This document shows, in pieces, positions 11,254 through 32,803 of a DNA stretch of 64,000 nt (its first letter is position 1; each line of letters starts with the position of its first letter). The position numbers were made by a program, and so were the translations under genes. The notes beneath the pieces are model-generated. The model was not told where the DNA came from and ran no database searches. It worked only from the letters and a program-made list of their open reading frames with translations. The stretch covers positions 199,710 to 263,709 of the IMG/VR virus record IMGVR_UViG_3300027736_001324; one strand, written 5' to 3'.

Positions 11254-11511
11254 ATGAGTAAAATGTTTACTGGAGAGCAAAAGATTAAGTTGACTCAACT
11301 TATCAACGAGGGCATGGTAGTCCTACATGAAATCGATACCCTACGTGAGGGGCTAAGTGATACTGTGAAGGCTATCGCAGAAGAACTGGATGTAAAGCCG
11401 GGGATTCTTAAGAAGGCAATATCTGTTGCACACAAAGCAAGTCTTGGTCAAACAAATGCTGACCACGAGGAATTAAATACTATCCTTGAGACAGTGGGTA
11501 AAACAATTTGA
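11254..11511 (+). CDS. T4 DsbA/GapR-like dsDNA-binding protein
   Basis: 85 aa helical protein, pattern similar to T4 DsbA (A.EEL.V....KK.I..AHK); directly upstream of the polymerase. Confidence 0.65.
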   Translation: MSKMFTGEQKIKLTQLINEGMVVLHEIDTLREGLSDTVKAIAEELDVKPGILKKAISVAHKASLGQTNADHEELNTILETVGKTI

Positions 11512-15023: not shown

Positions 15024-15397
15024 TCAAGAACATTTCTAGTTCCGGTAAGTACATAAATGTAATTGGTGAATCTGTTGCCAATTACATTAATAATTATTCA
15101 GGGGCGCAAGGTGTCGGCAATATAAGATTCAATACAGTTAATCAAAGTATGGAAGTGTATGACGGTAATGGTTGGATACTACTTCAGATGGGACACGTTA
15201 ATGTAGGGCTAAATGCTGAAGCAGAATCAATACTTGATTGGGCTAAAAAGAAGCGTGATGAAGAAATAGAAATTGATTTATTAGCTGCGGCCAATCCCAC
15301 TGTCAAAAATTTACTTGAGCAAATAAAAGAAAAAGAAGACCAAATACAAATGGTCATGACCTTGATTAAGAAAGAAGTTTCAATTGAAACAAGATAA
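15020..15397 (+). CDS. Hypothetical protein
   Basis: 125 aa ORF overlapping both neighbours; coiled-coil C-terminus. Confidence 0.7.
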   Translation: MIKNISSSGKYINVIGESVANYINNYSGAQGVGNIRFNTVNQSMEVYDGNGWILLQMGHVNVGLNAEAESILDWAKKKRDEEIEIDLLAAANPTVKNLLEQIKEKEDQIQMVMTLIKKEVSIETR

Positions 15398-16925
15398 TCT
15401 ATCACAAAAACATAACCCAGACTGGGCATTATTTTTACCCGCAGTAAGTAGTTTTTATATTGCTGGCTTGGGTAAACAACGCAAGGGTGAACAGTACTTT
15501 GATGCTGCACGTATCCCTGTAAGTTTCAATGGTGATGTTGAGAAACTAAACTTTCTTAATAGCAAAGAAGGTCTTTACTATTACAAGTGGGGATTGTACA
15601 GTGCTGGTCATGCTAACTTAGATACTACAGTTGATGATCCAAGTGAATCTATCATACGTGAACGTGAAGAAGGTACATTCATGTTGGGTGATAGTGGTGG
15701 ATTTCAGATTTTAAAAGGTCAATGGCCCGCAGACTGGAAAGATCCTAACTGTCCACGTGCCATGGTAAAGCGTAAAGCAGTATTGAAGTGGATGGACACA
15801 TACATGGACTATGGTATGTGCTTAGATATTCCTTCTCAATCATTAACTACGTTTGGCATGAAAGATAAGAATGGTAATAGCCTGCATGGTATCAGTACTA
15901 TTGAAGAAGCAATATCTGCCACACATATTAATAACGAATACTTTATAAATAATCGCTCAGGGAAATGTAAGTTTTTAAATGTGTTGCAAGGTCGCAATCA
16001 TACTCAAAGTGATGATTGGTATGAGGAGATGAAGAAGTACTGTGATCCAAACATCTATCCAGACAATCATTTTAATGGTTGGGCATTTGGTGGTCAGAAC
16101 AAGATTGACATTCATTTGACCTTGCGTAGATTGGTTGGTATTATCCATGATGGATTACTACAAGAAGGCAAGCACGACTTGATTCATTGTTTGGGTACAA
16201 GTATATTGGAGTATGCTGTATTGTTTACTGATATTCAAAAAGCTATACGTAAGTATCACAATCCAAATCTACAAATTACATTTGATTGTGCTAGTCCATT
16301 CTTTAGTGCTGCTAAGGGTCTTGCTTATTTCAATACAACTATTGAGCATAACAAGAAATGGTCTTATCAAATGGAAAAGACTGCTGAAAAGAAAAGTTAT
16401 GCTAATGATATGCGTAAATATCGTGATGCTGTATTGGCTGATGGTGTACATAAATCATTTACTGATAGTCCGGTAACTGATGCATTAGTAATGAAAGATA
16501 TGTGTTATCGTGGTGTGGGCTTCTTAGGACAGCACGGTAAAGAAACTAAAACAAGCTGGGATACACTAAGCTACACATTGATTCAAAGTCATAATGTTTG
16601 GATGCACATGAATGCGGTACAAGAGGCTAATCGTCAATATGAAACAGGTGTAGTTCCAAAGATGTTGGTGCATAAGTTTGAAGGTGATAACTTCTTTGGC
16701 AATATTATTGATGAAATCTTTTCTAAAAAAACAAAGCAAGAGTCATTAGAGTTGATTGATTATCATAGTAGTTATTGGAAACAATTCCAATCAGGTAGTC
16801 AGGGTATTAGCGGTAAGAAAACGGTTAATGCTATGAGTATGTTTGAAGAATTGTTTACAGTAGATGAAGAACCAATTGAGGAAATAGAAGATAGCGATGA
16901 AGCTATGTCATTAGTTTTGGAGTAA
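15384..16925 (+). CDS. dpdA: DpdA-like 7-deazaguanine DNA transglycosylase (TGT fold)
   Basis: LGDSGGFQ TGT motif, CLDIP, GWAFGG, IHCLG; co-located with folE/queD/queE; no CxCxxC Zn site seen. Confidence 0.85.
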   Translation: MKQDNLSQKHNPDWALFLPAVSSFYIAGLGKQRKGEQYFDAARIPVSFNGDVEKLNFLNSKEGLYYYKWGLYSAGHANLDTTVDDPSESIIREREEGTFMLGDSGGFQILKGQWPADWKDPNCPRAMVKRKAVLKWMDTYMDYGMCLDIPSQSLTTFGMKDKNGNSLHGISTIEEAISATHINNEYFINNRSGKCKFLNVLQGRNHTQSDDWYEEMKKYCDPNIYPDNHFNGWAFGGQNKIDIHLTLRRLVGIIHDGLLQEGKHDLIHCLGTSILEYAVLFTDIQKAIRKYHNPNLQITFDCASPFFSAAKGLAYFNTTIEHNKKWSYQMEKTAEKKSYANDMRKYRDAVLADGVHKSFTDSPVTDALVMKDMCYRGVGFLGQHGKETKTSWDTLSYTLIQSHNVWMHMNAVQEANRQYETGVVPKMLVHKFEGDNFFGNIIDEIFSKKTKQESLELIDYHSSYWKQFQSGSQGISGKKTVNAMSMFEELFTVDEEPIEEIEDSDEAMSLVLE

Positions 16926-16929
16926 TAAT

Positions 16930-17139
16930 ATGTATAAACAACGAATTGCTAAACTACAACAGAGGGCCATAGACCTTGATAAAGAAATCTTGAAGGCAGA
17001 AAAGGATACTAACTTTAACAAAGACGCCCTTAAAGCTATGCTGATAGACAGAAATGATGTATACTCTGAGATAAGAAGATATACAAAACTTCAATGGGAT
17101 GAAGACCACGAAAGTGTTAATTTTGAGGATGATAGATAA
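16930..17139 (+). CDS. Hypothetical coiled-coil protein
   Basis: 69 aa ORF in operon. Confidence 0.7.
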   Translation: MYKQRIAKLQQRAIDLDKEILKAEKDTNFNKDALKAMLIDRNDVYSEIRRYTKLQWDEDHESVNFEDDR

Positions 17140-17591
17140 TGGAACAACAAGAACAAGCTGATATGGAAAAGCGTCAACGCATTAAAGATAAAGCATTTCG
17201 TACAATCTTTGTACGATTTCAAAAAGAAGGTATTCATAAATACCCCGCAGCAGCAACAGACCCGTCACTTGCTACAGGTGATGAGTATGATGTTAGCTTT
17301 TTAGCAACTCCACATCGTCACATATTTCATTTTGAAGTGACAATTGAAGTATTTCACAACGACCGTGATATTGAGTTTATTCAATTCAAACGATGGTTAG
17401 AGAATCAATATTCTCAAGGAATCTTAGCATTGGATTACAAAAGTTGTGAAATGATTAGCGATGACCTTTATGAAGTTATTGCAACTCGGTATCCAAATCG
17501 TAATATCAAAATCAAAGTCTCTGAAGATGATGAGAATGGTGCTACGATTTCTTATAACAGAACTCAACCTTATCGTAACCTCGCTATTTAA
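17139..17591 (+). CDS. dpdL: DpdL-like QueD paralogue (T-fold; proposed CDG decarboxylase family)
   Basis: LATPHRHIF matches the LxxxHRHxF signature as I recall it; EGIH, SCEMI, VSEDDENG. Confidence 0.78.
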   Translation: MEQQEQADMEKRQRIKDKAFRTIFVRFQKEGIHKYPAAATDPSLATGDEYDVSFLATPHRHIFHFEVTIEVFHNDRDIEFIQFKRWLENQYSQGILALDYKSCEMISDDLYEVIATRYPNRNIKIKVSEDDENGATISYNRTQPYRNLAI

Positions 17592-17603
17592 AGGAAATAT
17601 AAA

Positions 17604-17810
17604 ATGGCAAAACAAACTTTTCAATCAAACCCACGTGTTACTCAAATCTTTGAGGACCTAGAAAAATATCTAGAATTCTGCGTGGATTACGGTTATAAAT
17701 ACAATGAAGCAGAACTCTATGATCAACGGAGTTATGTATATCGTCAGTATAGTAAATTTGCTACAGGCAAATTTGCTAAAGATCAATGGCAGGAAAACGC
17801 TCGTCCATAA
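17604..17810 (+). CDS. Hypothetical protein
   Basis: 68 aa ORF with AAGGA RBS. Confidence 0.7.
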   Translation: MAKQTFQSNPRVTQIFEDLEKYLEFCVDYGYKYNEAELYDQRSYVYRQYSKFATGKFAKDQWQENARP

Positions 17811-17814
17811 TGTT

Positions 17815-18393
17815 ATGATTAACCACCCCGTTAATAATTCTGACTTATCAGTTTATGAATATGATTTGCTACCGGAGTTTGACTTCACTAAGTTGGCTAG
17901 TTATATAAACGAATACAAAGAACAATATCCTAAAAATTATTATACTGATGGATATTGGGACGGGGGTAATTGGTGGCATTCAGACTATATTGTACATTAT
18001 CAAACTGATAAATTTAACGACTTAATAGCAAATATAGAAGAAAAGGCAACATCTATAATGCCCTCACAGAATATAAATGTTAGTTTGGAAGTGAAAGAGT
18101 CATGGATAATTGATTATAAAAGATTAAGTTTTCACAAAGAACATGATCACAGTCCAATTGGATTTAGTGCAGTATGTTATATAGATACAGTTTATGCATC
18201 TGATATTTGGTTTAACAAAACTAAAATAACACCTGAAACCGGGAAGTTAATAATATTTCCCGGCTCACTAAAACACAAAGTTAGCCCAATGACAAATTCA
18301 AATGGACATAGATTGATAATGGCTTTTAATTTATTTCCGAAAATAAACTATGACAAGCTAAACAAATATATAGATGATATAAAAAATGCGTAA
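17815..18393 (+). CDS. 2OG-Fe(II) oxygenase family protein
   Basis: HKEHDH, FSAVCYI, PETGKLIIFPGSLKHKV, RLIMAFN; start placed at ATG 17815 after the upstream stop. Confidence 0.8.
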   Translation: MINHPVNNSDLSVYEYDLLPEFDFTKLASYINEYKEQYPKNYYTDGYWDGGNWWHSDYIVHYQTDKFNDLIANIEEKATSIMPSQNINVSLEVKESWIIDYKRLSFHKEHDHSPIGFSAVCYIDTVYASDIWFNKTKITPETGKLIIFPGSLKHKVSPMTNSNGHRLIMAFNLFPKINYDKLNKYIDDIKNA

Positions 18394-19573
18394 ACTATTT
18401 TACATGGGTCTTGAACCCTACAAAGCAAGGTATACTCTACAGTTACAAGACTGGAATACTACTGTGTTTGATAAAAGAGGCATCAACTATGTTGTAGTCT
18501 CTGGTGAAACACTAAGTAATGATCAAGCAATTGTGACAGGTCAAGTATTAGATGCACATGGTCGTACATATTTTGGTATGTCACAATTGATGAATCTAAT
18601 CAAAATGATGAAACAAGGAGAATTAAATAATGAAGATGTTATCTACTTTGAGGACATGTTTCAACCCGGTATTGAAAGCCTTCCTTATATCCTCAATCAA
18701 ATCGATGCTAGTCACCGGCCTCGTATTTTTGTTCGCTGTCTTGCCCAGTCTATTGATCCTGACGATTTTGTTCATGTGTGGAATATGCAAGAGTTTATGG
18801 GTCATTATGAAAAGATGGTGGACTCATTTGTGGATGGAGTACTCGCAACTAATGAAGAAATGGTAATGCATATGAAGATTGCAGGTTGGAAGGCACCAAT
18901 CTACAATATCAGTGGGTTAGCATTTGGCAAGAGTGAAGTGCAAGGTCGTGTCGCAAGTATCAAACCATTCAATGAACGCAAGAACCGTGTAGTATTTTCT
19001 GCACGATGGGATCAGGAGAAACAACCTGATTTCTATATGGATTTAATTGAGCAATGGTACAGCAAAGAAAATCCAAATCATCCTATAAGTAGTATTGAAT
19101 TCTGTGTATGTAGTGGTGGCAAATTAAAATCCAATAGCGACAGTTATATGCAACGAACTCGTGACATGCAATCACGCGGGTTATTGAAAGTTTATGAGGA
19201 TCTAGAAAAGAATGACTACTACAACATTGTTAATGATAGTCGGGTTGTATTTAACTGTGCGTTACAGGACTGGGTTTCAAACACAGTCAGTGAGGCTGAT
19301 GCTCTCGGATGTAATGTTCTCTATCCTGCTTATCGCAGTTTCCCTGAAACTTTCGCTAACGATCCTGAACGTTTGTATATTCCTTGGTCTATTGATAATG
19401 CTATTGGTAAGTTGCGTCGGCTATTACAAGAGCCTCATAAGAATATGGGAAAGATAAGTGACCGAAACGATAGCACAGTAGATAGAATCTGTGATATACT
19501 TGAAGGCAAGGGCGAGTCTATGCTACGAATGGGTGTAGACTATCGTAAATATACTAGAGAAAGCAAATACTGA
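18386..19573 (+). CDS. GT-B fold glycosyltransferase
   Basis: VFSARWDQEKQP, QDWVSNTVSEADALGCNVLYP..RSFPE (GT4-like donor-binding region). Confidence 0.82.
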   Translation: MRKLFYMGLEPYKARYTLQLQDWNTTVFDKRGINYVVVSGETLSNDQAIVTGQVLDAHGRTYFGMSQLMNLIKMMKQGELNNEDVIYFEDMFQPGIESLPYILNQIDASHRPRIFVRCLAQSIDPDDFVHVWNMQEFMGHYEKMVDSFVDGVLATNEEMVMHMKIAGWKAPIYNISGLAFGKSEVQGRVASIKPFNERKNRVVFSARWDQEKQPDFYMDLIEQWYSKENPNHPISSIEFCVCSGGKLKSNSDSYMQRTRDMQSRGLLKVYEDLEKNDYYNIVNDSRVVFNCALQDWVSNTVSEADALGCNVLYPAYRSFPETFANDPERLYIPWSIDNAIGKLRRLLQEPHKNMGKISDRNDSTVDRICDILEGKGESMLRMGVDYRKYTRESKY

Positions 19574-19574
19574 T

Positions 19575-19862
19575 ATGTCAAGAATTCCAACAGACCTAAC
19601 AGATGAAGAAATTGAAGAATGCATTGATGGCAGCAGCGATGTTGATATGATACGTGAAATCATGACCATGGAAGATGTGTGGGATAAAGATAGTACTCAT
19701 ATAAATGAAGAAAACTTTGCTACACGTTTTGCTTATGCGATTGAAGGCTTCATTGATGCTGATGATCATACCCCTGAATATGATGAAGCATGGGATAACA
19801 ACTATGAGTGGGCAATGAGTATTGCCGAGAACATTAACGATTTATTAACTGAGGAAGAATAA
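19575..19862 (+). CDS. Acidic hypothetical protein
   Basis: 95 aa ORF in operon. Confidence 0.65.
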   Translation: MSRIPTDLTDEEIEECIDGSSDVDMIREIMTMEDVWDKDSTHINEENFATRFAYAIEGFIDADDHTPEYDEAWDNNYEWAMSIAENINDLLTEEE

Positions 19863-19863
19863 A

Positions 19864-20280
19864 ATGACAACATGGACATTAAAAACTCAACATAAAAAGA
19901 GTGCAATTGAAAAACAACACTGGTACAAAGACGGTAAAGAAATTATCCGTACTGAGGGTTATCGTTGGGGGATATTCTATTGCGAAAGTGATACACAACC
20001 TAAAATTGATTTAGTCAATGAGGATGGTTATCAGATTGGTAGCGATGATTATGAATGGGAACTTGAACATCTAGATGATGGTTGTTATGCTGATTGGGAA
20101 TTCCCTGAGGATATGAGTGAAGAAGAACAAGAAAAAATAACAGAGGCATGGGAAGAAGAATTCTATGATGGGCTAGAAGAATTGGGTTGGAGTTGTGATG
20201 ATACAGATTACATACTTGAAGGTCCTCTAGAGTTGTTAGATGAAGATGATAATATTGTGGGTCAAGGCGATCCAAGCTAA
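19864..20280 (+). CDS. Acidic hypothetical protein
   Basis: 138 aa ORF with GAGGA RBS. Confidence 0.7.
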   Translation: MTTWTLKTQHKKSAIEKQHWYKDGKEIIRTEGYRWGIFYCESDTQPKIDLVNEDGYQIGSDDYEWELEHLDDGCYADWEFPEDMSEEEQEKITEAWEEEFYDGLEELGWSCDDTDYILEGPLELLDEDDNIVGQGDPS

Positions 20281-20302
20281 ATAAATTTTTAAAGGAAATA
20301 AA

Positions 20303-20491
20303 ATGAACGCACATAATGATATTAAAACACAATTGGCAGCATACGAAGCCGAACATGAAAAGTTTGAAAAGGGTAATGCAGCAGCAGGAACTCGTGCCCG
20401 TAAAGCGTTGGGTGAACTAGCTAAAGCAGTTAAGGCTCGCCGTAACGAAATCACCGCTGAGAAAGCAGCACGTAAAGAAGCTAAGGCTTAA
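20303..20491 (+). CDS. Histone H1-like Hc1-family small DNA-binding protein
   Basis: KFEKGNAAAGTRARKALGELAKAVKARRNEI pattern. Confidence 0.75.
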   Translation: MNAHNDIKTQLAAYEAEHEKFEKGNAAAGTRARKALGELAKAVKARRNEITAEKAARKEAKA

Positions 20492-20493
20492 TC

Positions 20494-20700
20494 ATGGCAA
20501 CCCGCAAAAAGAAAACAGAAACTATTGATGCTACTGGACAAGATGTAGTAAAGATAGTTAAAGGTACACACTTGACAGTTACAACATTTCCAAATGGCAA
20601 AACTGAATTAGTTTGGGACGATGAAGCCCTATTGCGGGAAGTTACTGAAGCTATTGCTAGCGTTAAGCCAGCAAAAAAATCAAAAGCAAAATCAAAGTGA
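20494..20700 (+). CDS. Hypothetical basic protein
   Basis: 68 aa ORF. Confidence 0.65.
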   Translation: MATRKKKTETIDATGQDVVKIVKGTHLTVTTFPNGKTELVWDDEALLREVTEAIASVKPAKKSKAKSK

Positions 20701-20709
20701 TAAATAAAT

Positions 20710-20737
20710 ATGTAAGCAGCACAACGGTTGCTTACAT
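20710..20737 (+). promoter_or_regulatory. Stem-loop in the folE leader
   Basis: atgtaagcagc-acaacg-gttgcttacat, 11-bp stem (one G-U), just after TAAATAAATA. Confidence 0.6.
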
Positions 20738-20772
20738 TTCAAAACACAAACCATCACAAAGGAAGGTTATCT

Positions 20773-21453
20773 ATGAGTTATAATAAAACAAAAACAGATC
20801 CAGAGTTGGGTCAAAAAGTACACGAACATTTGATTAAGATGGGAGTTGAAACTCCAATCAAAGACGGAGGTCAAATTGTTGATCGTAAAGGCAAAGTACA
20901 AGTTATTGAAACTTTATTTGCTGACATTATGGTAGCGTTGGGTCTTGACTTAACTGATGACAGTCTTATGGACACCCCAAAGCGTGTAGCAAAGATGTAT
21001 GTCAACGAAATCTTTTGGGGTCTTGATTATGAAGCATTCCCTAAATGTACCGCAGTTGATAACAAAATGAAGTACAACGAAATGGTATGCGAACGCAATA
21101 TCAATGTACAAAGTAACTGTGAACATCACTTTGTCGTCATTGACGGTCTTGCTACTGTAGCATATGTTCCCAATCAAAAGGTGCTTGGATTGAGTAAAAT
21201 CAATCGTATCGTAGAATATTTTAGCAAGCGTCCACAAATTCAAGAACGATTGACTGAACAAATCTTTCACGCATTGCAATATATTCTGGAAACAGAAGAT
21301 GTTGCGGTTATGATTGACGCTAAACATTACTGTGTAGCCGCACGTGGCGTAGAAGATACTGGTAGTAGTACTGTCACTAGTAAGTTGGGCGGAGGATTTA
21401 AATCTGACCCGGCAGCAAGAGCAGAATTCTATCAACTGGCTAGGAAACAATAA
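20773..21453 (+). CDS. folE: GTP cyclohydrolase I
   Basis: DTPKRVAKMY, SNCEHH, GLSKINRIV..FSKRPQIQERLT, HYCVAARGV; start set at ATG 20773 behind GGAAGG. Confidence 0.96.
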   Translation: MSYNKTKTDPELGQKVHEHLIKMGVETPIKDGGQIVDRKGKVQVIETLFADIMVALGLDLTDDSLMDTPKRVAKMYVNEIFWGLDYEAFPKCTAVDNKMKYNEMVCERNINVQSNCEHHFVVIDGLATVAYVPNQKVLGLSKINRIVEYFSKRPQIQERLTEQIFHALQYILETEDVAVMIDAKHYCVAARGVEDTGSSTVTSKLGGGFKSDPAARAEFYQLARKQ

Positions 21454-21620
21454 TGGAAGTACAACCTAAAGATACAAGCAAGGGACATTTTTATGTTAGC
21501 CTTGTAAAGAGTGCCATCCGTATCGTAGCAGGTGCTTGCTTAATTGGAGGAAACTTGTTAATGGCAGGATATTGTCTAATCATAGCAGAAATGCTTGGTA
21601 TTGTTGAGGAGTTAGTATAA
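21453..21620 (+). CDS. Small membrane protein (55 aa, not in ORF track)
   Basis: MEVQPKDTSKGHFYVSLVKSAIRIVAGACLIGGNLLMAGYCLIIAEMLGIVEELV; start and stop overlap both neighbours. Confidence 0.7.
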   Translation: MEVQPKDTSKGHFYVSLVKSAIRIVAGACLIGGNLLMAGYCLIIAEMLGIVEELV

Positions 21621-21856
21621 TGGGATTTCATAAACCAATGGACTATAACAGTGTACATCATCAAATTTATATGGCCGGAGTAGAATTACATTCTAGTCAT
21701 AATGACGGATTCACTACTTGGGAAATCAAAAAAGATTTACATCGTATCAAGTGGTTGTTAGATGAAATCATGGCTGATGCTCCGACCTTTGCAGGAGAAG
21801 AAGAATTCTTAGATGAACATTCTAAAGTAAAGATGTGGAGAACATTGAAAAAATGA
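21620..21856 (+). CDS. Hypothetical protein
   Basis: 78 aa translationally coupled ORF. Confidence 0.7.
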   Translation: MGFHKPMDYNSVHHQIYMAGVELHSSHNDGFTTWEIKKDLHRIKWLLDEIMADAPTFAGEEEFLDEHSKVKMWRTLKK

Positions 21857-22317
21857 TATTCAATAGAATTAAAGAATTAAAACTACAAGGCTTAAAGATA
21901 GGTATTGTATTCTCACAATTTGATATTCTACACGCAGGACATATCGCAATGCTTAGTGAAGCCAAGAATCATTGTGATTACCTAATTGCTGGATTACAAA
22001 ACAATGCACAATGGGATAGACCAGATAAGAATGCACCCATTCAAAGTATTGTTGAAAGACAAATCAGTTTAAGTGCTGTCCGTTTCGTAGATGAAATTGT
22101 TGTTTACAATACTGAAAAAGATTTGGAAGACATACTGTTGACATTGCCTGTAGATGTGCGTATACTAGGGGTTGAGTACATGGAGAAAGACTTTACCGGA
22201 CGAGCAATCTGTGAGAAGCGTAAGATTGAATTAGTATTCAATAGTCGTGACCATAGTTTCAGCAGTAGCAGTTTGCGTAAGAGAGTAGCAGAAGCGGAAC
22301 AAAATAAGGTGAAATAA
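21853..22317 (+). CDS. Cytidylyltransferase-like (TagD/glycerol-3-phosphate CTase family)
   Basis: FDILHAGH (HxGH), VDEIVVY, SSSSLRKR. Confidence 0.88.
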   Translation: MIFNRIKELKLQGLKIGIVFSQFDILHAGHIAMLSEAKNHCDYLIAGLQNNAQWDRPDKNAPIQSIVERQISLSAVRFVDEIVVYNTEKDLEDILLTLPVDVRILGVEYMEKDFTGRAICEKRKIELVFNSRDHSFSSSSLRKRVAEAEQNKVK

Positions 22318-22628
22318 TGGACAGAGAAGAAGATCAGTTTACTAGAAATTTTGATGTTAAAAGAATTTCAAGAAGTTATTCTAATGCCCGTTCTCATTAC
22401 GACTCATTTAATACTTATGGTCACAAATCTTATACTTATTATAGCCATGATGATGAAATGCTAGATGTTGAAATGTCTAGACGAGGCTGGGATGAACTTA
22501 TGCGCTATTATAGAATGAATGAAAAATGTTCAGCACTAGAAACTTACGAACACGTTATGCGAGAAAAACATCCTGCTATTAAAGATGCATATGAAAAATA
22601 TCAAATGTTAATGGAGTTATACAGATGA
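22317..22628 (+). CDS. Hypothetical protein
   Basis: 103 aa coupled ORF. Confidence 0.65.
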   Translation: MDREEDQFTRNFDVKRISRSYSNARSHYDSFNTYGHKSYTYYSHDDEMLDVEMSRRGWDELMRYYRMNEKCSALETYEHVMREKHPAIKDAYEKYQMLMELYR

Positions 22629-23482
22629 CAAAGAAAATACTTATTATGGGCTTGCCTGGCGCAGGCAAAACATTCTTAGCTACGGCATTGAAGAAATACA
22701 TTGAAGAAAATTCAGGTATTCATCATTTTCCAATGGATCGTGCTGTTAATATGGAATATGTTCCACATAACTATAAATGTAGTGTAGATTGGTTCAATGC
22801 CGACGAAATTCGTAAACGATTTAATGATTGGGACTTTAGCCGTGAAGGTCGTATTCGTCAATCATTGCGTATGGCTGAGTTTGCATTAAAATGTACTAGT
22901 GACTTTGTTATATGTGACTTTGTTGCACCATTAGTTGAGATGCGTAATAACTTCAAAGCTGATTGGACTATCTGGGTCGATACTATTGACCAAGGTCGCT
23001 TTGATGACACAAACAAAGCATTTATTCCACCAGATGTATATGATTTCCGTGTGACTGAACAAAATGCTGACAAGTGGGCAGAGTTTATTGGTCAACATAT
23101 ACTAGACAATCGGCGTAGACCAGTCTTTGATTGGAAGAAAGAAACGGTACAGATGTTAGGTCGTTGGCAACCATGGCATGCTGGTCATCGTGCATTGTTT
23201 GAAAGATTGATAGCAAAAACTGGGCAAGTTGTTATTCAAGTACGTGATGTACAAGGATGGCAAGGAAGTAATCCTTTTGCGATTGAACAAGTTAAGGGGT
23301 TTATTCGTAAAGATTTGGATCCAATCTATCAAGGCCAATATGAGATACAAGTTGTACCCAATATTGTCCATATCGGATGGGGTCGTGGAGTAGGTTATAC
23401 ATCGGGTGAAGAAACATTTGATGAAAGTATTACTCAAATTAGTGCTACTAATATCCGAAAAGAAATGAATTTAGGTAAATAG
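22625..23482 (+). CDS. Fusion of APS-kinase-like P-loop domain and HIGH-family nucleotidyltransferase
   Basis: GLPGAGKT; NADEIR..DWDFSREGR.RQ; C-terminal GRWQPWHAGH and ISATNIR. Confidence 0.8.
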   Translation: MTKKILIMGLPGAGKTFLATALKKYIEENSGIHHFPMDRAVNMEYVPHNYKCSVDWFNADEIRKRFNDWDFSREGRIRQSLRMAEFALKCTSDFVICDFVAPLVEMRNNFKADWTIWVDTIDQGRFDDTNKAFIPPDVYDFRVTEQNADKWAEFIGQHILDNRRRPVFDWKKETVQMLGRWQPWHAGHRALFERLIAKTGQVVIQVRDVQGWQGSNPFAIEQVKGFIRKDLDPIYQGQYEIQVVPNIVHIGWGRGVGYTSGEETFDESITQISATNIRKEMNLGK

Positions 23483-23483
23483 A

Positions 23484-23558
23484 TATAACCGGTCTCTTAT
23501 GGGCTCATCCCGGTATACAAATTCTGCGTCCTATGCTATAATAACATAGGAGAACATC
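23484..23558 (+). promoter_or_regulatory. Structured queD leader with RBS-sequestering hairpin
   Basis: Stem accgg(23488-92)/ccggt(23510-14); stem cctatg(23530-35)/catagg(23545-50) covers the AGGAGA RBS; loop contains TATAAT. Confidence 0.55.
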
Positions 23559-24032
23559 ATGGCAAAATATATTTCAACAAAGACTTACAAGCAGATAGGT
23601 CCAGTAGCTTATCGTCAATGGCGTGCAGATAGTCATTGCAATCTAATACATGGCTACGCACTTTCATTTCATTTTGAATTTGAAGCTGATACATTAGATG
23701 CCCGTAATTGGGTAACAGACTTTGGTGGACTAAAGCCTCTAAAATCTGTATTAGAAGATTGGTTTGATCATACATTACTAGTCGCACAAGATGACCCAAT
23801 GCGTGAACATTTACTTGAGTTGGGTAGACTTAAGCTAGCAAAGATTACAGAAGTTGAAAAGACTGGCTGTGAGGGTATTGCTGATTTCTTATACGAATAC
23901 ATTAACACTATTCTATTGCCTAGCTTTGGTGCTAGTGAAGCAGAACGTGTTTGGTGTAGCAAAGTAGAAGTAAGAGAAACAGATGCTAACATGGCAATGC
24001 GTGTTGGGCATAGAGAAGATAGGGAGTTTTAA
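23559..24032 (+). CDS. queD: 6-carboxy-tetrahydropterin synthase (QueD/PTPS)
   Basis: RQW..DSHCNLIHGY, DFGGLK, FDHTLL, GCEG, VEVRET. Confidence 0.88.
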   Translation: MAKYISTKTYKQIGPVAYRQWRADSHCNLIHGYALSFHFEFEADTLDARNWVTDFGGLKPLKSVLEDWFDHTLLVAQDDPMREHLLELGRLKLAKITEVEKTGCEGIADFLYEYINTILLPSFGASEAERVWCSKVEVRETDANMAMRVGHREDREF

Positions 24033-24036
24033 TAAT

Positions 24037-24810
24037 ATGTCTATTAATAACATGAAATCGCCAATTAATTATTTCCCACTTAAAGTGGGAAACACTGAAT
24101 TAAAAAAAATTAGAAATACGTTTAGTCTACATGATATTAATCAAAAATGGATGGGATATAATCTAGAAAATAAAGAAAATAAAGAAAATGATTGGCAGGC
24201 ACATTGGCAGGCACGTGAATTTTTTATAGAATTAGAATTGGCGTACGGCAAATGTGTTACTAGTGGACTGGGATTAGGAGTAATACAAACTTTATTAGCG
24301 GAGAAAGATAACGTTACTGAAGTAATTGTATATGAAAAAAATCCAGATGTTATTGAAATGTTTAAAATTTTAGCCGAGAAATCAAATATTGATACTTCTA
24401 AAATCGTAATAATAAATGAAGATGCGAATAATATAAAAAATATTACATGTGATTGTTTATTTTTGGATCATTTTGAATATGAACCCTTTAGTGAAATAGA
24501 AGAAACAGTTAAAAGAATAGCTTCTCAAAATACAATCAATATAGTATGGTTTTGGCCTGCATGGCGTGTGTTTTCACTATATTGTATAGATACGAATAAA
24601 GAGATAAATGAAAATTCTTTTTTAGAATGGACATCAACTTTAAACATATCTAAATTTCCAAACCAGATACCATCTCACTTGTTTGATAATTTAATTGAAT
24701 TTATTAATCCTATTTGGGATAACTTAAACGCACCAAACAAACATAAAATTGAAGCAAATAAACAGAAGAATGAGTTAATTAATTTTTTTAAAAAACGCAA
24801 TACAAATTAA
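24037..24810 (+). CDS. Class I SAM-dependent methyltransferase-like (spermidine-synthase-like motif)
   Basis: TSGLGLGVI motif I, VYEKN.DVI, INEDA, LFLDHF; very AT-rich. Confidence 0.65.
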   Translation: MSINNMKSPINYFPLKVGNTELKKIRNTFSLHDINQKWMGYNLENKENKENDWQAHWQAREFFIELELAYGKCVTSGLGLGVIQTLLAEKDNVTEVIVYEKNPDVIEMFKILAEKSNIDTSKIVIINEDANNIKNITCDCLFLDHFEYEPFSEIEETVKRIASQNTINIVWFWPAWRVFSLYCIDTNKEINENSFLEWTSTLNISKFPNQIPSHLFDNLIEFINPIWDNLNAPNKHKIEANKQKNELINFFKKRNTN

Positions 24811-24825
24811 TTAAGGAACATATTA

Positions 24826-25674
24826 ATGGCAAAATTAAAAGTCGCAGAATTATTCTATAGCATTCAAGGTGAAGGTCGCTATATGGGCGTCCCTTCTGTC
24901 TTTCTACGCACATTTGGATGTAACTTCAAATGTGCAGGGTTTGGTATGCCTAAGGGCGAACTAAGCAAAGAAGTAGAAGATATCGCTAGTCGCATACATT
25001 ACTATACTGATTATAAACAACTACCATTGGTCAGTACAGGCTGTGATAGTTATGCTAGTTGGGACCCAAGATTCAAAGACTTAAGTCCGATGCTTGAAAC
25101 AGATAGTATTGTTGATAGCATTATGGATATGCTACCACACAATCGTTGGTTGAGTGAACATCTTGTTATCACAGGCGGCGAACCATTATTAGGTTGGCAA
25201 CGTAGTTATGTTGATTTGCTTTCACATGAAAACATGCGCGGATTACAAGAATTAACTTTTGAAACTAACGGAACACAAGAATTGCAACAAGACTTAAAAA
25301 TCTTTTTACATAAATGGTGTATCAGTCGTAGCATGGGTGCAATAACATTTAGCGTCAGTCCTAAACTAAGTATCAGCGGAGAGAAGTGGGAAGAAGCAAT
25401 AAGACCTGAAGTTGTATATGAATATACTCAAGTGGGTCATGTATATCTTAAATTTGTTGTAGCAAACAAACAAGACGTAGAAGAAGCACAAGAAGCGGTT
25501 AATGAATACAGTAAGCGTGGCTTTAGAGGTCATGTATATTTGATGCCTTGCGGCGGTGTTGAAAGTTTATATAATATGAATGCTAGAACAGTTGCTAATG
25601 AAGCAATGCGTTTAGGCTGGCGTTATAGTGATAGACTTCAGGTACCTCTTTTCAAGAACGCATGGAATACTTGA
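24826..25674 (+). CDS. queE: 7-carboxy-7-deazaguanine synthase (radical SAM)
   Basis: ELFYSIQGEG, VFLRTFGCNFKC..GCDS, ITGGEPLL, FETNGT, SVSPKL. Confidence 0.93.
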   Translation: MAKLKVAELFYSIQGEGRYMGVPSVFLRTFGCNFKCAGFGMPKGELSKEVEDIASRIHYYTDYKQLPLVSTGCDSYASWDPRFKDLSPMLETDSIVDSIMDMLPHNRWLSEHLVITGGEPLLGWQRSYVDLLSHENMRGLQELTFETNGTQELQQDLKIFLHKWCISRSMGAITFSVSPKLSISGEKWEEAIRPEVVYEYTQVGHVYLKFVVANKQDVEEAQEAVNEYSKRGFRGHVYLMPCGGVESLYNMNARTVANEAMRLGWRYSDRLQVPLFKNAWNT

Positions 25675-25768
25675 TGAATTTCTTTTGGGGATTCTTACTT
25701 GGATATATAGTAGGTGTATTATACATGTGCTATCGTTCCAATATAGATGCTAGAGTGGATAGAGAATA

Positions 25769-26026
25769 ATGCCCTCAAGTGATTGGACTACACAATCAGC
25801 CGATGCTTATCATTTTAAAAGATGTGTTATGGGTAGAAAATTAAAGTTTACCCTATTGCCTAGACGATGCTATGTAACAAAGCGTATAATGTGGTTAGAG
25901 AGTGCATATTGTATTACCGCAGGATACAGAGCACGAGCACATTTTGGTGATAGCATTTATGTTTATGAACATCGTTGGTATGATAAAGATGAATATTTAA
26001 TAGCAAGATTAAGGGATTTAGTATGA
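25769..26026 (+). CDS. Hypothetical protein
   Basis: 85 aa coupled ORF; a 31-aa hydrophobic ORF lies at 25674-25769. Confidence 0.6.
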   Translation: MPSSDWTTQSADAYHFKRCVMGRKLKFTLLPRRCYVTKRIMWLESAYCITAGYRARAHFGDSIYVYEHRWYDKDEYLIARLRDLV

Positions 26027-26217
26027 GATTTGAAATGCGTTGGCTTATTACAGCAGGATGGGATGGGCCTGAGAAGATATTACAATATCGTTATCAAACA
26101 GAAATAACAGACTATGCTTCACAGAATCCTAGAACAGGTGGATTTCTTAAACGGGCAGGATTTACCGAATGGGTTACTGTTCCTTCAGTAGATGAGGTAT
26201 GGAATGCGGACATATAA
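26023..26217 (+). CDS. Hypothetical protein
   Basis: 64 aa coupled ORF. Confidence 0.6.
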   Translation: MRFEMRWLITAGWDGPEKILQYRYQTEITDYASQNPRTGGFLKRAGFTEWVTVPSVDEVWNADI

Positions 26218-27562
26218 CAAAAGAATAGGCTTTCTAATTGCCGATCAGCACTTTATCCCGCATGGTGGCATAGGTCAATTCGCTAAAGGCTTTACTGAAA
26301 TGTGTCAACGTATCAACTGGAAAGTTGATATTATACTAGACAAACAACCAACAAATGAATTTAGCGACTATGTAAAATCGTTAGGTGCTAACATTGTCTA
26401 TCCATCTAATCCATTACGCTATTCATCACATACAGCTACATTCGCATTTAGTGATAGCATTAACTTTGAGAAGATGGTTAACTTTAGAGAAAGTATACTA
26501 CAGGCTTTTCAAACAAATATCTATGATATGTTAGTATGTAATACACAGGAAGCAATGAGTGCTGCTTATGCCATGGGTATAGGCAAGTATATCCCAGTAG
26601 TATTCTATACACATTCATACAGCATGGTCTTCCGTGATGAACAAGATTTTAGTGACGTATGTATAGATGAGTATCATAACTTTTTTAATAAGCATATGGA
26701 ACTATCACATAGTTTTGTAGGAACTCAAAGTCAAAAGAACGTTGATGAGATGACCAAGTATGGAGCAAAGAATGTTTCATTGTTGCGTATGCCATTAAGT
26801 GAACGTGGATTACTGGACCCTAGTATTGGTCCTCGCAAGGGTGTATTGTTTATTGGACGATGGGAAGAACGCAAGAACCCGTCTGCCTATATCAAAATAA
26901 TGAAAGAAACACAACTACCCTGTAAAGTAATGACTAATAGTAATGGTGCTAAGAAGTTTGAGAAAGCATTTAGTGAAGCTGGTATTACTGATTACGAAAT
27001 TAAAATTGCTATCGTTGGACAAGAGAAAGTAGATTTCATTAAGAGTTGTAAAGTATTCTTTATGCCAGCATTGGGTGAGAACTATCCATTTGCTTTTAGT
27101 GAATGTTTGGGGCATATGCCATGTGTTGTTTTAGATAATCAAGAATGGTCTGATAACTTTGATAGTAAGTATTTCTATAAAGAGAAACTAGCCAATGCTG
27201 GAAATCTAATTAAATTATTATACAATGTTGACAACTACTATGATACCGGCGCATTAGATTATATCAAGCAATTAGATAATGATACTGCACAAGGTTGGAT
27301 ACAATTCTTAGATAACTTTGTAGCAAAGCGTAGCAATACTAATGCCGCAAAGATTAACAACTATGATACAGTATGCTATAGAGATTATATTAAAGAATTA
27401 GATCGTGGGCATTTGGCTCGGGAAGATTTTGAAAGTGTATTGGCTAATCGTCATAAGTTTATCATTAATACATACACAGATGATAATAGCTATTTAAGTA
27501 AAGACCCGGTTTATAAACCAATTGAAGAGGAAACAGGCGAGAGTCTGTTTGAATTTGTATGA
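26204..27562 (+). CDS. GT4-like (GT-B) glycosyltransferase with C-terminal SLFEF motif
   Basis: PHGGIG, LFIGRWEERKNP, ENYPFAFSECLG. Confidence 0.85.
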   Translation: MRTYNKRIGFLIADQHFIPHGGIGQFAKGFTEMCQRINWKVDIILDKQPTNEFSDYVKSLGANIVYPSNPLRYSSHTATFAFSDSINFEKMVNFRESILQAFQTNIYDMLVCNTQEAMSAAYAMGIGKYIPVVFYTHSYSMVFRDEQDFSDVCIDEYHNFFNKHMELSHSFVGTQSQKNVDEMTKYGAKNVSLLRMPLSERGLLDPSIGPRKGVLFIGRWEERKNPSAYIKIMKETQLPCKVMTNSNGAKKFEKAFSEAGITDYEIKIAIVGQEKVDFIKSCKVFFMPALGENYPFAFSECLGHMPCVVLDNQEWSDNFDSKYFYKEKLANAGNLIKLLYNVDNYYDTGALDYIKQLDNDTAQGWIQFLDNFVAKRSNTNAAKINNYDTVCYRDYIKELDRGHLAREDFESVLANRHKFIINTYTDDNSYLSKDPVYKPIEEETGESLFEFV

Positions 27563-28380
27563 AAAAAGTATTAATAACAGGTAACAGTGGTTACATCGGT
27601 AGTCATCTTAGTAAGATGCTACGCACAGATTATCAAATATATGGATTGGATATTAATCCATCACAATACTCCGTTACCGATCATTATCAACTCAATATCA
27701 ATAAGGTGTTTAATATTGATATGGAATTTGACGCAGTAATTCATTTAGCAGCATTAGTTAATGTTAGTGAAAGTGAAAGAATGCCCATTCAATATTACAT
27801 CACTAACTTAAATGGTACAATGAATGTTATCAATAAAGTAAAGACAAAGAACTTTATCTTTGCTAGCACTGGTGCTGCACAAGATTGTGAAAGTGCATAT
27901 GGTATCAGTAAACGTGCTGCTGAGGATGTGGTGCGTGAGTATTGTACAGTACACAATCCCAAAGATTACACTATCTTTAGATTCTATAACGTAATCGGTA
28001 GTGATGGGTTTGCGCCAACTAATCCAGACGGATTGATGTATAACCTGATGAAGGCTAAAGAGAGAGGCGAGTTTACTATCTACGGTACTGACTATGGTTC
28101 AAGTGACGGTACTTGTGTGCGTGATTACGTTCATGTTAATGAGATATGTGACGCATTATCTAGTGCTATTGAAAAGCCAAGCAATCAGATAGAATGCTTG
28201 GGGCATGGAGTTGGACATTCAGTTAGAGATATTGTTAATCTATATAAAAAGGTTAACAACGTTGAATTTCTAGTAAAGCACGGACCAAGAAGAAAGGGTG
28301 ACTTAGCAGTATCTGTATTAGATAATGTGTCACCCTATATGAAAGAGTTATACTCTTTGGAAGAACTACTTAAGGTCTAA
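27559..28380 (+). CDS. NAD-dependent epimerase/dehydratase (GalE-like)
   Basis: ITGNSGYIG, HLAA, FAST, YGISK, FRFYNV, RDYVHV, RRKGD. Confidence 0.93.
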   Translation: MKKVLITGNSGYIGSHLSKMLRTDYQIYGLDINPSQYSVTDHYQLNINKVFNIDMEFDAVIHLAALVNVSESERMPIQYYITNLNGTMNVINKVKTKNFIFASTGAAQDCESAYGISKRAAEDVVREYCTVHNPKDYTIFRFYNVIGSDGFAPTNPDGLMYNLMKAKERGEFTIYGTDYGSSDGTCVRDYVHVNEICDALSSAIEKPSNQIECLGHGVGHSVRDIVNLYKKVNNVEFLVKHGPRRKGDLAVSVLDNVSPYMKELYSLEELLKV

Positions 28381-28752
28381 AAACTTTATTTGGTTTGTTG
28401 AAAACACAACATACCAAACATCATCTCCCTCATCGTGTTCAGCAATGATACTATCATATCCGTCTGCTATTAATTCTTCACGTAGTTCTAAATAATCTTC
28501 TTTCTCTAGTCCTACTAACTCATCCATTGTTGCTTCATATGTCTTGTTCATGGTCAATGACGCAGATATGATATATTTTCCGTATAGTTTTGCTTCACGA
28601 ATAGAAGTAGTAAAAAAATGTCCTAGTACAGCATTTGGATCTCCTGTACTAGTTCCTAGCGTAGCATTATCAAATGACGAGAATTTATTGTTAGTACCGT
28701 GATAGGCAACAACACCCGAACTACTTTCAGCAATAAATTCTCTTGCTCTCAT
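28366..28752 (-). CDS. ADP-ribosyltransferase-like domain (ART-PolyVal type) with capsid-targeting-like N-terminus
   Basis: MRAREFIAE; AYHGT..F..F; GHFFT...A..YG; GYDSII. Confidence 0.72.
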   Translation of the reverse strand: MRAREFIAESSSGVVAYHGTNNKFSSFDNATLGTSTGDPNAVLGHFFTTSIREAKLYGKYIISASLTMNKTYEATMDELVGLEKEDYLELREELIADGYDSIIAEHDEGDDVWYVVFSTNQIKFLDLK

Positions 28753-28753
28753 T

Positions 28754-32757: not shown

Positions 32758-32803
32758 TTGACTTTATTGCGTAATTCTGTTACACTATATGTATTATTTA
32801 TCA
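32758..32803. promoter_or_regulatory. Divergent promoter region: sigma70 promoter (+) for uvsE and late-type TAAATA (-) for the cargo operon
   Basis: TTGACT(32758)-17 bp-TACACT(32781); minus-strand GATAAATA at 32795-32802. Confidence 0.65.

Follow-up and report, generated by a model that had tools for sequence, protein, structure and literature searches.

The closest described relative of the locus analyzed here is the QueC-less pathway of Cellulophaga phage phiST and relatives (Cui, Hutinet et al., NAR 2023; PMC10516641), in which FolE, QueD and QueE act together with DpdA3 and DpdL; phiST carries 7-deazaguanine (dDG) in its DNA. The Pseudomonas jumbo phage PA5oct (Arenbergviridae) carries a related locus (EST35_0311-0322) in which no gene of the cluster except QueE is annotated, and its DNA resists restriction enzymes whose sites contain G (PMC12191111). 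Sugar decoration of DNA is represented by the T4 alpha- and beta-glucosyltransferases, GT-B fold enzymes that use UDP-hexose to decorate a modified base (5-hmC) in the major groove, with lineage-specific glycans and a role in evading restriction. In huimycin and dapiramicin biosynthesis in actinomycetes, FolE, QueD and QueE are clustered with HuiG, a GT4-type GT-B enzyme that puts a sugar on a free 7-deazaguanine-derived base, at N2 (PMC7439116); this pathway goes through QueC and preQ0, has neither DpdL nor DpdA, and yields a free metabolite. Finally, in mannosyl- and galactosyl-queuosine of animal tRNA a sugar is added to a 7-deazaguanine derivative that is already in a nucleic acid, on the cyclopentenediol side chain of queuosine (see PMC12518689).

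Gene content of the deazaguanine block

We analyzed a window of 64,000 nucleotides at the end of a 264-kb (263.7-kb) contig of a giant freshwater phage (IMG/VR record IMGVR_UViG_3300027736_001324, positions 199,710 to 263,709), rated 69% complete by CheckV. A first-pass annotation had described at 15384-28380 a 7-deazaguanine pathway without QueC, interleaved with sugar enzymes, and this observation was confirmed: all the genes it named are present at the stated places, on the + strand, in one uninterrupted run from the DNA polymerase (11508-14213) to 28380, where the strand switches. The features are listed below; counts out of 28 refer to IMG/VR relatives with full flanks, and counts out of 80 to related loci.

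15384..16925 (+), DpdA-like DNA-guanine transglycosylase, predicted TGT fold, PA5oct/Phosso-type family, 513 aa; 34% identical to PA5oct EST35_0316.
16930..17139 (+), 69-aa ORF of unknown function between dpdA and dpdL; 23 of 80; no family hit.
17139..17591 (+), DpdL, a QueD-like T-fold protein, the proposed CDG decarboxylase; phrog_17812, 1.6e-32; 28 of 28.
17604..17810 (+), conserved 68-aa ORF of unknown function; 28 of 28; no family hit.
17704..18393 (+), 2OG-Fe(II) oxygenase (2OG-FeII_Oxy_5; PF13759, 7.9e-10), likely true start near 17815; the homologue in one related locus (L006) is 193 aa; accessory, 3 of 28.
18386..19573 (+), GT1, a predicted GT-B, GT4-like glycosyltransferase.
19575..20280 (+), two very acidic small ORFs (95 and 138 aa, pI 4.05) of unknown function; poorly conserved, 3 and 17 of 80.
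20303..20491 (+), Hc1 histone-H1-like DNA-binding protein; PF07432, 1.5e-14; 17 of 28.
20728..21453 (+), FolE, GTP cyclohydrolase I; PF01227, 7.7e-62; 28 of 28.
21835..22317 (+), cytidylyl/adenylyltransferase, RfaE-domain-II/TagD-like; PF01467, 6e-10; TIGR02199, 3e-17; PDB 1coz, 1e-10; 19 of 28.
22625..23482 (+), bifunctional P-loop kinase plus NMNAT-like nucleotidyltransferase (285 aa), with an APS-kinase-like N-terminal half and NMNAT-like residues 174-245; phrog_10255, 1.8e-40; 7 of 28.
23559..24032 (+), QueD, CPH4 synthase; PF01242, 2.8e-15; phrog_2389, 2.6e-43; 27 of 28.
23983..24810 (+), strain-specific class-I methyltransferase-like ORF inserted in a variable slot; 0 of 80.
24826..25674 (+), QueE, radical-SAM CDG synthase; phrog_2076, 1.9e-53; 25 of 28.
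26192..27562 (+), GT2, a second GT4-like GT-B glycosyltransferase, a distant paralogue of GT1; 19 of 28.
27559..28380 (+), GalE-like UDP-hexose 4-epimerase (SDR), short (273 aa), its start overlapping the GT2 stop; TIGR01179, 1e-47; PDB 7k3p, 9e-33; 26 of 28.

The DpdL contains LATPHRHIF, which fits the published LxxxHRHxF signature (PMC10516641), and it matched ACP17 DpdL at 4e-40 and phiST CGPG_00067 at 4e-5 (tblastn). The DpdA is very divergent and had no Pfam, PHROG or NCBIfam hit; however, its AF2 model (pLDDT 88.7) matched only TGT and DpdA (7ui4) structures among the top 50 Foldseek hits in PDB, its ESM Atlas neighbours are TGT and DpdA clusters, and D103 (in DSGG) and D301 (in FDCASP) are invariant. 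It is not demonstrably a phiST-type DpdA3: that protein has 259 aa, and BLASTP gave an E of only 0.45, thus no detectable sequence similarity. It belongs instead to a separate TGT-fold family of 513-540 aa shared with PA5oct and Phosso. As in phiST, the DpdA is encoded next to the DNA polymerase region.

The first-pass annotation had noted no queC or queF motif in the window and had proposed a search of the rest of the genome for queC. We did not find QueC in the whole contig, nor QueF, the only hit being a weak T-fold match inside FolE. Neither gene occurs in five complete relatives that carry DpdL and GT1, where no QueC scored above the cut-off. The locus thus has the known QueC-less type of deazaguanine pathway.

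GT2 is GT4-like by ESM Atlas (score 0.98-0.99 to GT4 clusters), with a weak Pfam hit (PF00534), and is 43% identical to the BUCT-ZZ01 homologue next to FolE. The GalE-like protein has the GxxGxxG and YxxxK motifs, and in one subgroup of relatives (L028) a full-length GalE lies directly after GT1, at 288 bits, above the cut-off. The methyltransferase is weakly supported (phrog_15480 at 1e-4, and a class-I MTase-like fold in ESM Atlas, with methyltransferase and spermine-synthase clusters as neighbours). The kinase gene may activate a sugar or alditol, but given its NMNAT-like domain it may serve NAD salvage instead. GT2, the cytidylyltransferase and the kinase are variable among lineages, while the 2OG oxygenase and the methyltransferase-like ORF, which the first-pass annotation had counted in the same block, are not conserved parts of it.

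Genomic association of GT1 with DpdL

The new result of this analysis concerns GT1. Its AF2 model (pLDDT 94.9) has a GT-B fold, with Foldseek hits to BshA, MshA, PimA and glycogen synthase at 4e-13, and residues R207, K212, D295 and E303 of the donor site are conserved. GT1 thus resembles small-molecule GT4 enzymes; although the first-pass annotation had pointed out that the T4 DNA glucosyltransferases are GT-B, GT1 does not resemble them, and neither the alpha- nor the beta-enzyme appears in the top 50 PDB hits or the 30 listed Swiss-Prot hits. No special structural similarity to the queuosine-glycosylating enzymes was seen either. GT1 (by structure) and GT2 are the only two Glycos_transf_1-like genes in the contig.

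In all 14 independent lineages sampled, GT1 lies near a DpdL gene, usually adjacent to or overlapping it, often with overlapping stop and start codons, and across unrelated phage families; no GT1 was seen without DpdL. These lineages are the window's own group, in which all 28 relatives with full flanks carry both genes, six cultured lineages and seven divergent metagenome contigs. In the cultured phages GT1 lies adjacent to or near DpdL and within the cluster: PA5oct (EST35_0317, HMM 3e-51), BCSR5 (4e-87), ACP17, X1 and BUDD (one lineage), BUCT-ZZ01 (62% identity) and Phosso (4e-54). The seven divergent representatives were picked on GT1 similarity alone, and all carry DpdL on the same short contig, often overlapping GT1. 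PA5oct shares a syntenic order (polymerase, structural protein, DpdA, GT1, DpdL, then QueE), but identities are only 34-58%, and GT2, a full GalE and the cytidylyltransferase are lacking from its locus.

The linkage is asymmetric. Six DpdL lineages have no GT1 anywhere in their genomes: phiST, in which dDG was shown by mass spectrometry, MA9V-3, RHph_I1_18, Ahp1, Bakedbeans and D479. Their DpdLs are scattered among the GT1-linked ones in the tree, consistent with GT1 being an add-on that acts after DpdL. Compared with phiST, the cluster described here adds GT1, GalE, GT2 and nucleotidyltransferases.

Possible roles of the glycosyltransferases

The first-pass annotation had inferred that the genome carries dCDG/dDG and perhaps a further sugar-decorated derivative, and our results support this interpretation in part. 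The presence of a QueC-less FolE-QueD-QueE-DpdL-DpdA pathway and the pairing of GT1 with DpdL come directly from the analysis, and the pairing strongly supports the idea that sugar enzymes, in the case of GT1, belong to the pathway; that any sugar ends up on DNA is inference only, drawn from gene linkage rather than from chemical data, whether for this phage or for any phage that carries GT1.

Several alternatives were considered. The phage DNA may carry plain dDG, as in phiST, or dCDG, with GT1, GT2, GalE and the nucleotidyltransferases acting on host envelope glycans, virion proteins or a host defence factor, and lying in the cluster only because they share its timing of expression. We regard this as unlikely, although phiST makes dDG with DpdL and without any GT, GT2-like genes occur in Erwinia phages that lack DpdL, the nearest structures to GT1 are cell-envelope or small-molecule GT4 enzymes, and GT2, the cytidylyltransferase and the kinase vary among relatives. 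It is opposed by the consistent GT1-DpdL linkage and by the conservation of GT1, which among relatives exceeds that of the DNA polymerase, although this comparison is biased because the loci were chosen by GT1 identity. Even less likely, DpdL and GT1 may make a soluble glycosylated deazapurine or pterin, analogous to huimycin or to tetrahydrobiopterin glucoside, serving as a metabolite, inhibitor or transient intermediate and not installed in DNA, while DpdA would insert a different base, either CDG or 7-deazaguanine. HuiG offers a precedent, a BH4 glucosyltransferase is among the structural hits of GT1 (rank 49), the set FolE, T-fold enzyme, SDR and GT-B matches the enzyme types of pterin-glycoside synthesis, and GT1 is tied more tightly to DpdL, a base-level enzyme, than to DpdA. 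However, QueE and a DpdA with intact catalytic Asp residues always accompany the pair where the contig is long enough, the SDR is GalE-like and not a sepiapterin reductase, and no benefit to a phage from a soluble product is known.

It is very unlikely that queC or queF lies in the unassembled 31% of the genome, in which case the DNA would carry dPreQ0, dADG, dG+ or dPreQ1 and DpdL would be a second QueD-like enzyme. Incompleteness of the contig is the argument for it, but besides the lack of a QueC above the cut-off in the five complete genomes with the same DpdL-GT1 cluster, deazaguanine genes are clustered in every relative, DpdL lacks the catalytic Cys of QueD, and in the literature DpdL phages are defined by lacking QueC.

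The explanation that we consider somewhat more likely than not is that the block is a phage module that modifies guanine in DNA. Following the established enzymology of their families, FolE, QueD and QueE would convert GTP to 7-carboxy-7-deazaguanine (CDG). DpdL would then remove the carboxyl group to give 7-deazaguanine, a step proposed by Cui et al. 2023 and never shown in vitro, and the TGT-fold DpdA, as inferred from its fold and catalytic aspartates, would exchange this base for guanine in phage DNA after replication. From gene linkage we infer that GT1, using a nucleotide sugar, adds a hexose to the DpdL product, either on the free base before insertion or on the base in DNA. In this view the phage GalE adjusts the UDP-hexose pool, so that the donor is probably UDP-Gal or UDP-Glc, and GT2, and perhaps the cytidylyltransferase, extend or vary the glycan in a lineage-specific way; other sub-lineages carry a DegT/DnrJ-type aminotransferase fragment, a GT-A enzyme, a methyltransferase and a B12 radical-SAM enzyme in the same positions.

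Sugar-supply genes are interleaved between folE, queD and queE and differ between sub-lineages, and the GTs have no other obvious target in the contig: ThyA is a canonical thymidylate synthase, no hydroxymethylase was found, and there are no other GT-B genes. In ACP17 the GT1 gene lies between dpdA and dpdL, and expressing dpdA plus dpdL alone gave no dDG (PMC10516641). The restriction resistance of the DNA of the relative PA5oct also speaks for this reading, and HuiG is a precedent for a GT4-type enzyme that glycosylates a free 7-deazapurine base. On the other hand, 7-deazaguanine has no hydroxyl group, unlike the T4 acceptor, and here the queuosine side chain is also absent; a retaining GT4 enzyme would therefore have to form an N- or C-glycoside, or use the CDG carboxylate. 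Nothing shows DNA binding by GT1, whose nearest structural neighbours are generic GT4 enzymes, and a complex prediction for DpdA plus GT1 gave no answer. As for the site of attachment, C7 lies in the major groove and is the sterically sensible one, while N2 is the only one with a biochemical precedent (huimycin).

The predicted result would be phage DNA in which G is replaced by a sugar-bearing 7-deazaguanine that blocks restriction. The recurrence of GT1 near DpdL in many unrelated phages points to a sugar-decorated DNA base that has not yet been described.

Deazaguanine genes of the freshwater phage contig

The window is the last 64 kb of a 263,709-bp IMG/VR virus contig that CheckV rates 69% complete, from a phage that occurs, as assembled contigs, in many freshwater metagenomes. 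From the family-B DNA polymerase to position 28380 the genes form one uninterrupted run on the + strand, after which the strand switches. A megablast search of the block against the phage collection found no match, and promoter and terminator scans found no more sites than in shuffled sequence. The gene order around the polymerase is syntenic with the Pseudomonas jumbo phage PA5oct (Arenbergviridae): polymerase, a 243-aa structural-protein homologue, DpdA-like, GT1-like (GT1 being the first glycosyltransferase of the cluster), DpdL, then QueE. The following features are referred to by position below:

11508-14213 (+), family-B DNA polymerase
17139-17591 (+), DpdL, 150 aa
18386-19573 (+), GT1, predicted GT-B glycosyltransferase
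19575-19862 and 19864-20280 (+), two very acidic small proteins
20303-20491 (+), Hc1 histone-H1-like protein, followed at 20494-20700 by a second small basic ORF
23983-24810 (+), methyltransferase-like ORF
26192-27562 (+), GT2, GT4-like glycosyltransferase

The first-pass annotation had described a 7-deazaguanine pathway without QueC, interleaved with sugar enzymes, and this observation was confirmed, since every gene it named is present. FolE (PF01227, 7.7e-62), QueD (PF01242, 2.8e-15; phrog_2389, 2.6e-43) and QueE (phrog_2076, 1.9e-53) are encoded together. The ORF at 17139-17591 carries LATPHRHIF, consistent with the LxxxHRHxF signature that distinguishes DpdL, a QueD-like T-fold protein, from QueD, whose motif is CxxxHGH (Cui et al., NAR 2023, PMC10516641). 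It matches DpdL of phage ACP17 at 4e-40 and CGPG_00067 of phage phiST at 4e-5.

The presence of queC elsewhere in the genome had been named beforehand as a result that would count against this reading. We found no PF06508 (QueC) hit in the whole contig, bearing in mind its 69% completeness, and no QueC above the cut-off in five complete genomes with the same cluster type. QueF was also absent, the only PF14489 hit being a sub-threshold T-fold match inside FolE. We considered a stand-alone PP-loop gene at 10597-11205 as a substitute for QueC, but it passes the cut-off of the TilS N-domain (125.6 bits against 93.6) and was rejected, although the window holds no tRNA gene. In the Xanthomonas phages X1 and BUDD, a small gene annotated as “PAPS reductase family” (PP-loop superfamily) lies directly after FolE in the DpdL-GT1 cluster (7843-8376 and 7885-8379 of the respective loci); it does not reach the QueC model.

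The 513-aa protein annotated as DpdA had no hit in Pfam, PHROGs or NCBIfam, none against the TGT model (PF01702) in a search of the contig even at E 10, and none with phmmer against PDB sequences, so that its fold was settled only by structure prediction. We aligned 45 homologues from IMG/VR loci (35–97% identity) and predicted the structure of the protein (pLDDT 88.7). All top 50 Foldseek matches in PDB are tRNA-guanine transglycosylases or the bacterial DNA preQ0 insertase DpdA, 7ui4 (E 6e-8 to 1e-6, TM by target about 0.5). D103 in LGDSGGFQ and D301 in FDCASP are invariant in the 45 sequences, and by motif they correspond to the two catalytic aspartates of TGT (D102 in DSGG and D280 in FDC of the Z. 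mobilis enzyme).

The protein is not, however, demonstrably a DpdA3 of the phiST type. The phiST protein (CGPG_00065) has 259 aa and gave a BLASTP E of 0.45, and tblastn found homologues in PA5oct, Phosso and a Vibrio phage but none in phiST. The family of the window (513–540 aa) is separate, and is shared with PA5oct, Phosso, a Vibrio phage and two divergent metagenome contigs, while ACP17, X1/BUDD and BUCT-ZZ01 use another DpdA family of 416–437 aa. BLASTP against the ACP17 DpdA was not significant either, and hhalign between the two DpdA families gave E 5e-4 at a probability of 33%, suggesting distant homology at most.

Predicted glycosyltransferases and accessory genes

GT1 scores below the Pfam gathering cut-off (PF13524, 22.5 bits against 25), and a profile search of PDB sequences gave only E 5e-4, with no close solved relative. 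GT1 is a distinct family. With 119 diverse homologues, AlphaFold gave a model with pLDDT 94.9. The model has a two-Rossmann-domain GT-B fold nearest to retaining GT4 enzymes (BshA, MshA, PimA, glycogen synthase, SenB and LmbT, at E 4e-13 and higher, with TM 0.6–0.65 for the first four). Across the 119 sequences R207, K212 and D295 are invariant and E303 is at least 90% conserved; we infer that the Arg/Lys pair and the D-x7-E motif are the donor-phosphate residues and the EX7E-like motif found where GT4 enzymes bind the donor. No T4 alpha- or beta-glucosyltransferase appears in the top 50 PDB hits, and the contig shows no sign of the T4-type acceptor, a hydroxymethyl-pyrimidine made by a thymidylate-synthase-like hydroxymethylase. 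The only ThyA-family gene of the contig passes the thymidylate synthase equivalog cut-off (346 bits against 327), no ThyX was found, and there is thus no sign of a hydroxymethylase. GT1 and GT2 are the only GT-B genes of the contig, which offers them no other obvious DNA target.

GT2 is GT4-like by comparison with ESM Atlas. The SDR is GalE-like (TIGR01179, 1e-47; PDB 7k3p, 9e-33), with GxxGxxG and the Ser/Tyr/Lys triad intact, but it is short (273 aa) and its TIGR01179 score is 162.6 bits against an equivalog cut-off of 262.3. A 160-aa nucleotidyltransferase resembles RfaE domain II and TagD, and a 285-aa protein joins a P-loop kinase to an NMNAT-like nucleotidyltransferase and could equally belong to NAD salvage. 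The 2OG oxygenase is real, whereas the methyltransferase has only weak support.

Other small genes lie within the cluster. The 62-aa basic Hc1 protein (PF07432, 1.5e-14) is kept in 17 of 28 relatives. The two acidic proteins directly after GT1 (pI 4.05) are poorly conserved among relatives and could be DNA mimics or anti-restriction proteins. Upstream of the polymerase lie a non-specific DNA/RNA endonuclease (8588-9403; PF01223, 5.8e-39), a ferritin-like protein (7587-8027) and a 1075-aa protein with a dCMP deaminase domain (65-3292). At the other end (28366-32739, - strand, and 32789-33844), an ART-PolyVal ADP-ribosyltransferase, a GP88-family protein and an 826-aa basic DUF6321 protein converge on the end of the cluster, and a UvdE UV endonuclease follows.

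Association of GT1 with DpdL across phages

In the phage collection, tblastn found GT1 only in phages that also hold DpdL, and next to it: BUCT-ZZ01 (62% identity), ACP17, X1 and BUDD. An HMM built from six seeds also detected PA5oct EST35_0317 (3e-51), BCSR5 QRE00063 (4e-87) and Phosso XYS97382 (4e-54), all scored before being added to the model. All three lie in the deazaguanine cluster, and the PA5oct and Phosso genes directly abut DpdL. In ACP17 the order is dpdA, GT1, dpdL, queE. The GT1 family is large, with 796 clusters at 50% identity (E at or below 1e-3) and at least 567 IMG/VR loci. In genome collections, a search with a reduced alignment found GT1 only on MAG contigs; four of eight are Bacteroidota bins (Haliscomenobacter twice, Chitinophagales, Bacteroidetes), a weak hint at the host group.

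We then picked seven divergent metagenome representatives on GT1 similarity alone (31–39% identity). Pfam could not name the neighbours of these genes, and we used HMMs for DpdL, QueE, FolE, QueD and DpdA that were built from the fetched loci themselves. All seven contigs carry a DpdL homologue (3e-17 to 4e-36), usually as the gene directly before or after GT1 and sometimes with overlapping stop and start, and QueE, FolE or QueD are nearby wherever the contig is long enough. In two of them a DpdA of the window's type lies next to the DpdL-GT1 pair on the opposite strand. Although the sample is small (14 lineages), GT1 was never seen without DpdL. Some DpdL domains are fused to uncharacterised N-terminal regions, in proteins of 383 aa (gp176 of Vibrio phage Bakedbeans, 11215-12366 of its locus) and 317 aa (460-1413 of a second locus, L015), and one GT1 relative has 655 aa, with an unexplained C-terminal extension.

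The reverse does not hold. The phages phiST, MA9V-3, RHph_I1_18, Ahp1, Bakedbeans and D479 have DpdL but no GT1 anywhere in their genomes, by a profile that did find the positive controls PA5oct, Phosso and BCSR5. In a DpdL tree these proteins are not clustered but scattered among the GT1-linked ones (four changes), RHph_I1_18 being sister to the window and Ahp1 sister to PA5oct, although the protein is short and most forks are weak. This asymmetric pattern fits an enzyme acting on the DpdL product.

Close relatives were compared using 80 IMG/VR loci ranked by GT1 identity, of which 28 have full 10-kb flanks. The counts are as follows.

Occurrence of cluster genes among the 28 relatives with full flanks (methyltransferase-like ORF: among the 80 loci)
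Polymerase, DpdA, DpdL, a 68-aa ORF, GT1 and FolE: 28 of 28 each
QueD: 27 of 28
GalE-like: 26 of 28
QueE: 25 of 28
GT2: 19 of 28
Cytidylyltransferase: 19 of 28
Kinase-nucleotidyltransferase: 7 of 28
2OG oxygenase: 3 of 28
Methyltransferase-like ORF: 0 of 80

In the distant subgroup (loci L028 to L094), GT1 is more conserved than the replicative polymerase (about 76% against 59% identity), a comparison biased by the ranking of the loci on GT1. FolE there is only about 35% identical, so a different FolE has replaced it.

The sugar genes vary within this constant core. In the window the cytidylyltransferase and the kinase lie between FolE and QueD, and GT2 and the GalE-like gene follow QueE. In a second sub-lineage (L028 and others) GT1 is followed directly by a full-length GalE (287.7 bits, above the equivalog cut-off) and a DegT/DnrJ aminotransferase fragment. 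The slot between queD and queE is a variable hot spot: it holds the methyltransferase-like ORF in the window, an HNH homing endonuclease in a close relative (L006, 14943-15638), and a B12 radical-SAM enzyme, a GT-A glycosyltransferase and a SAM methyltransferase in the second sub-lineage (L028, 16196-19729). Interleaved, lineage-specific sugar genes within a constant base-synthesis core are what a modification with a variable glycan would produce. In the Synechococcus phage BUCT-ZZ01, a gene annotated as xanthine-guanine phosphoribosyltransferase lies between QueE and QueD (7093-7554 of its locus), hinting at a nucleotide-level branch in that phage; we searched for a homologue elsewhere in the contig under study and found none.

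A proposed sugar-bearing deazaguanine

The interpretation of the first-pass annotation, that the genome carries dCDG or dDG and perhaps a further sugar-decorated derivative, is partly supported. The core is a known kind of system, a QueC-less deazaguanine DNA modification, whereas the conserved DpdL-GT1 pair and the variable sugar module are, as far as we could find, undescribed. Full-text searches found no paper describing a glycosylated deazaguanine in DNA or linking a glycosyltransferase to DpdL. DpdL and DpdA3 appeared only in the 2023 paper and its preprint, and the main text of that paper does not contain the words glycosyl or sugar.

The conversion of GTP to H2NTP (FolE), to CPH4 (QueD) and to CDG (QueE) follows established family enzymology. 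The conversion of CDG to 7-deazaguanine by DpdL is a proposal from the literature and unproven. The remaining steps, including the presence of any modified base in virion DNA, are inferred: DpdA would exchange the base for G in DNA, GT1 would glycosylate the DpdL product using a UDP-hexose tuned by GalE, and GT2 and other enzymes would extend the glycan. The tight coupling to DpdL hints that GT1 acts at the level of the base. The major-groove logic of all known phage modifications favours attachment at C7, while the only biochemical precedent is N2-glycosylation of a free 7-deazapurine by the GT4-type HuiG in huimycin biosynthesis (PMC7439116). Although this is inference from gene linkage, without chemical data for any phage that carries GT1, the pair and the variable module make a sugar-bearing deazaguanine the most likely product. 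Consistent with this model, PA5oct DNA resists restriction enzymes whose sites contain G, and nucleases that sense hypermodified G target it (PMC12191111).

Other explanations fit the data less well. The DNA may carry plain dDG, with the glycosyltransferases acting elsewhere; this is possible for GT2, GalE and the nucleotidyltransferases, but is hard to reconcile with the pairing of GT1 and DpdL. The enzyme types would also match the synthesis of a soluble glycosylated deazapurine or pterin, but the constant presence of QueE and DpdA argues against it. A BH4-glucoside pathway in particular would consist of FolE, PTPS, sepiapterin reductase and BGluT with no deazapurine enzymes, whereas here QueE and a DpdA are present, the SDR is GalE-like rather than a sepiapterin reductase, and BGluT ranks only 49th among generic GT4 hits. 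A QueC in the missing part of the genome is unlikely, because the five complete relatives lack it above the cut-off.

A broader reading, possible but somewhat less likely than not, is that the DpdL-GT1 pair marks a large, undescribed class of phage DNA hypermodification, in which 7-deazaguanine bases carry lineage-specific glycans. These could be galactose or glucose, or amino-sugar or methylated variants where a DegT-type aminotransferase fragment, a GT-A enzyme, a methyltransferase and a B12 radical-SAM enzyme replace GT2. It would be the first glycosylated purine-type base in any genome, present in hundreds of environmental phage contigs and in cultured phages such as PA5oct, ACP17, X1, BCSR5, BUCT-ZZ01 and Phosso.

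Every phage DNA glycosylation known so far sits on hydroxymethyl-pyrimidines, and every known deazaguanine DNA base carries only a small substituent at C7, so that a sugar on a deazaguanine would be a new chemical class of natural DNA base. The model offers a concrete explanation for why expressing dpdA and dpdL from ACP17 in E. coli gave no dDG: the GT1 gene lying between them was left out. Such a base would bear on the evasion of restriction enzymes and CRISPR systems, and on type IV restriction and the END nucleases, which already target PA5oct, and it would also affect nanopore and enzymatic sequencing of environmental phages.
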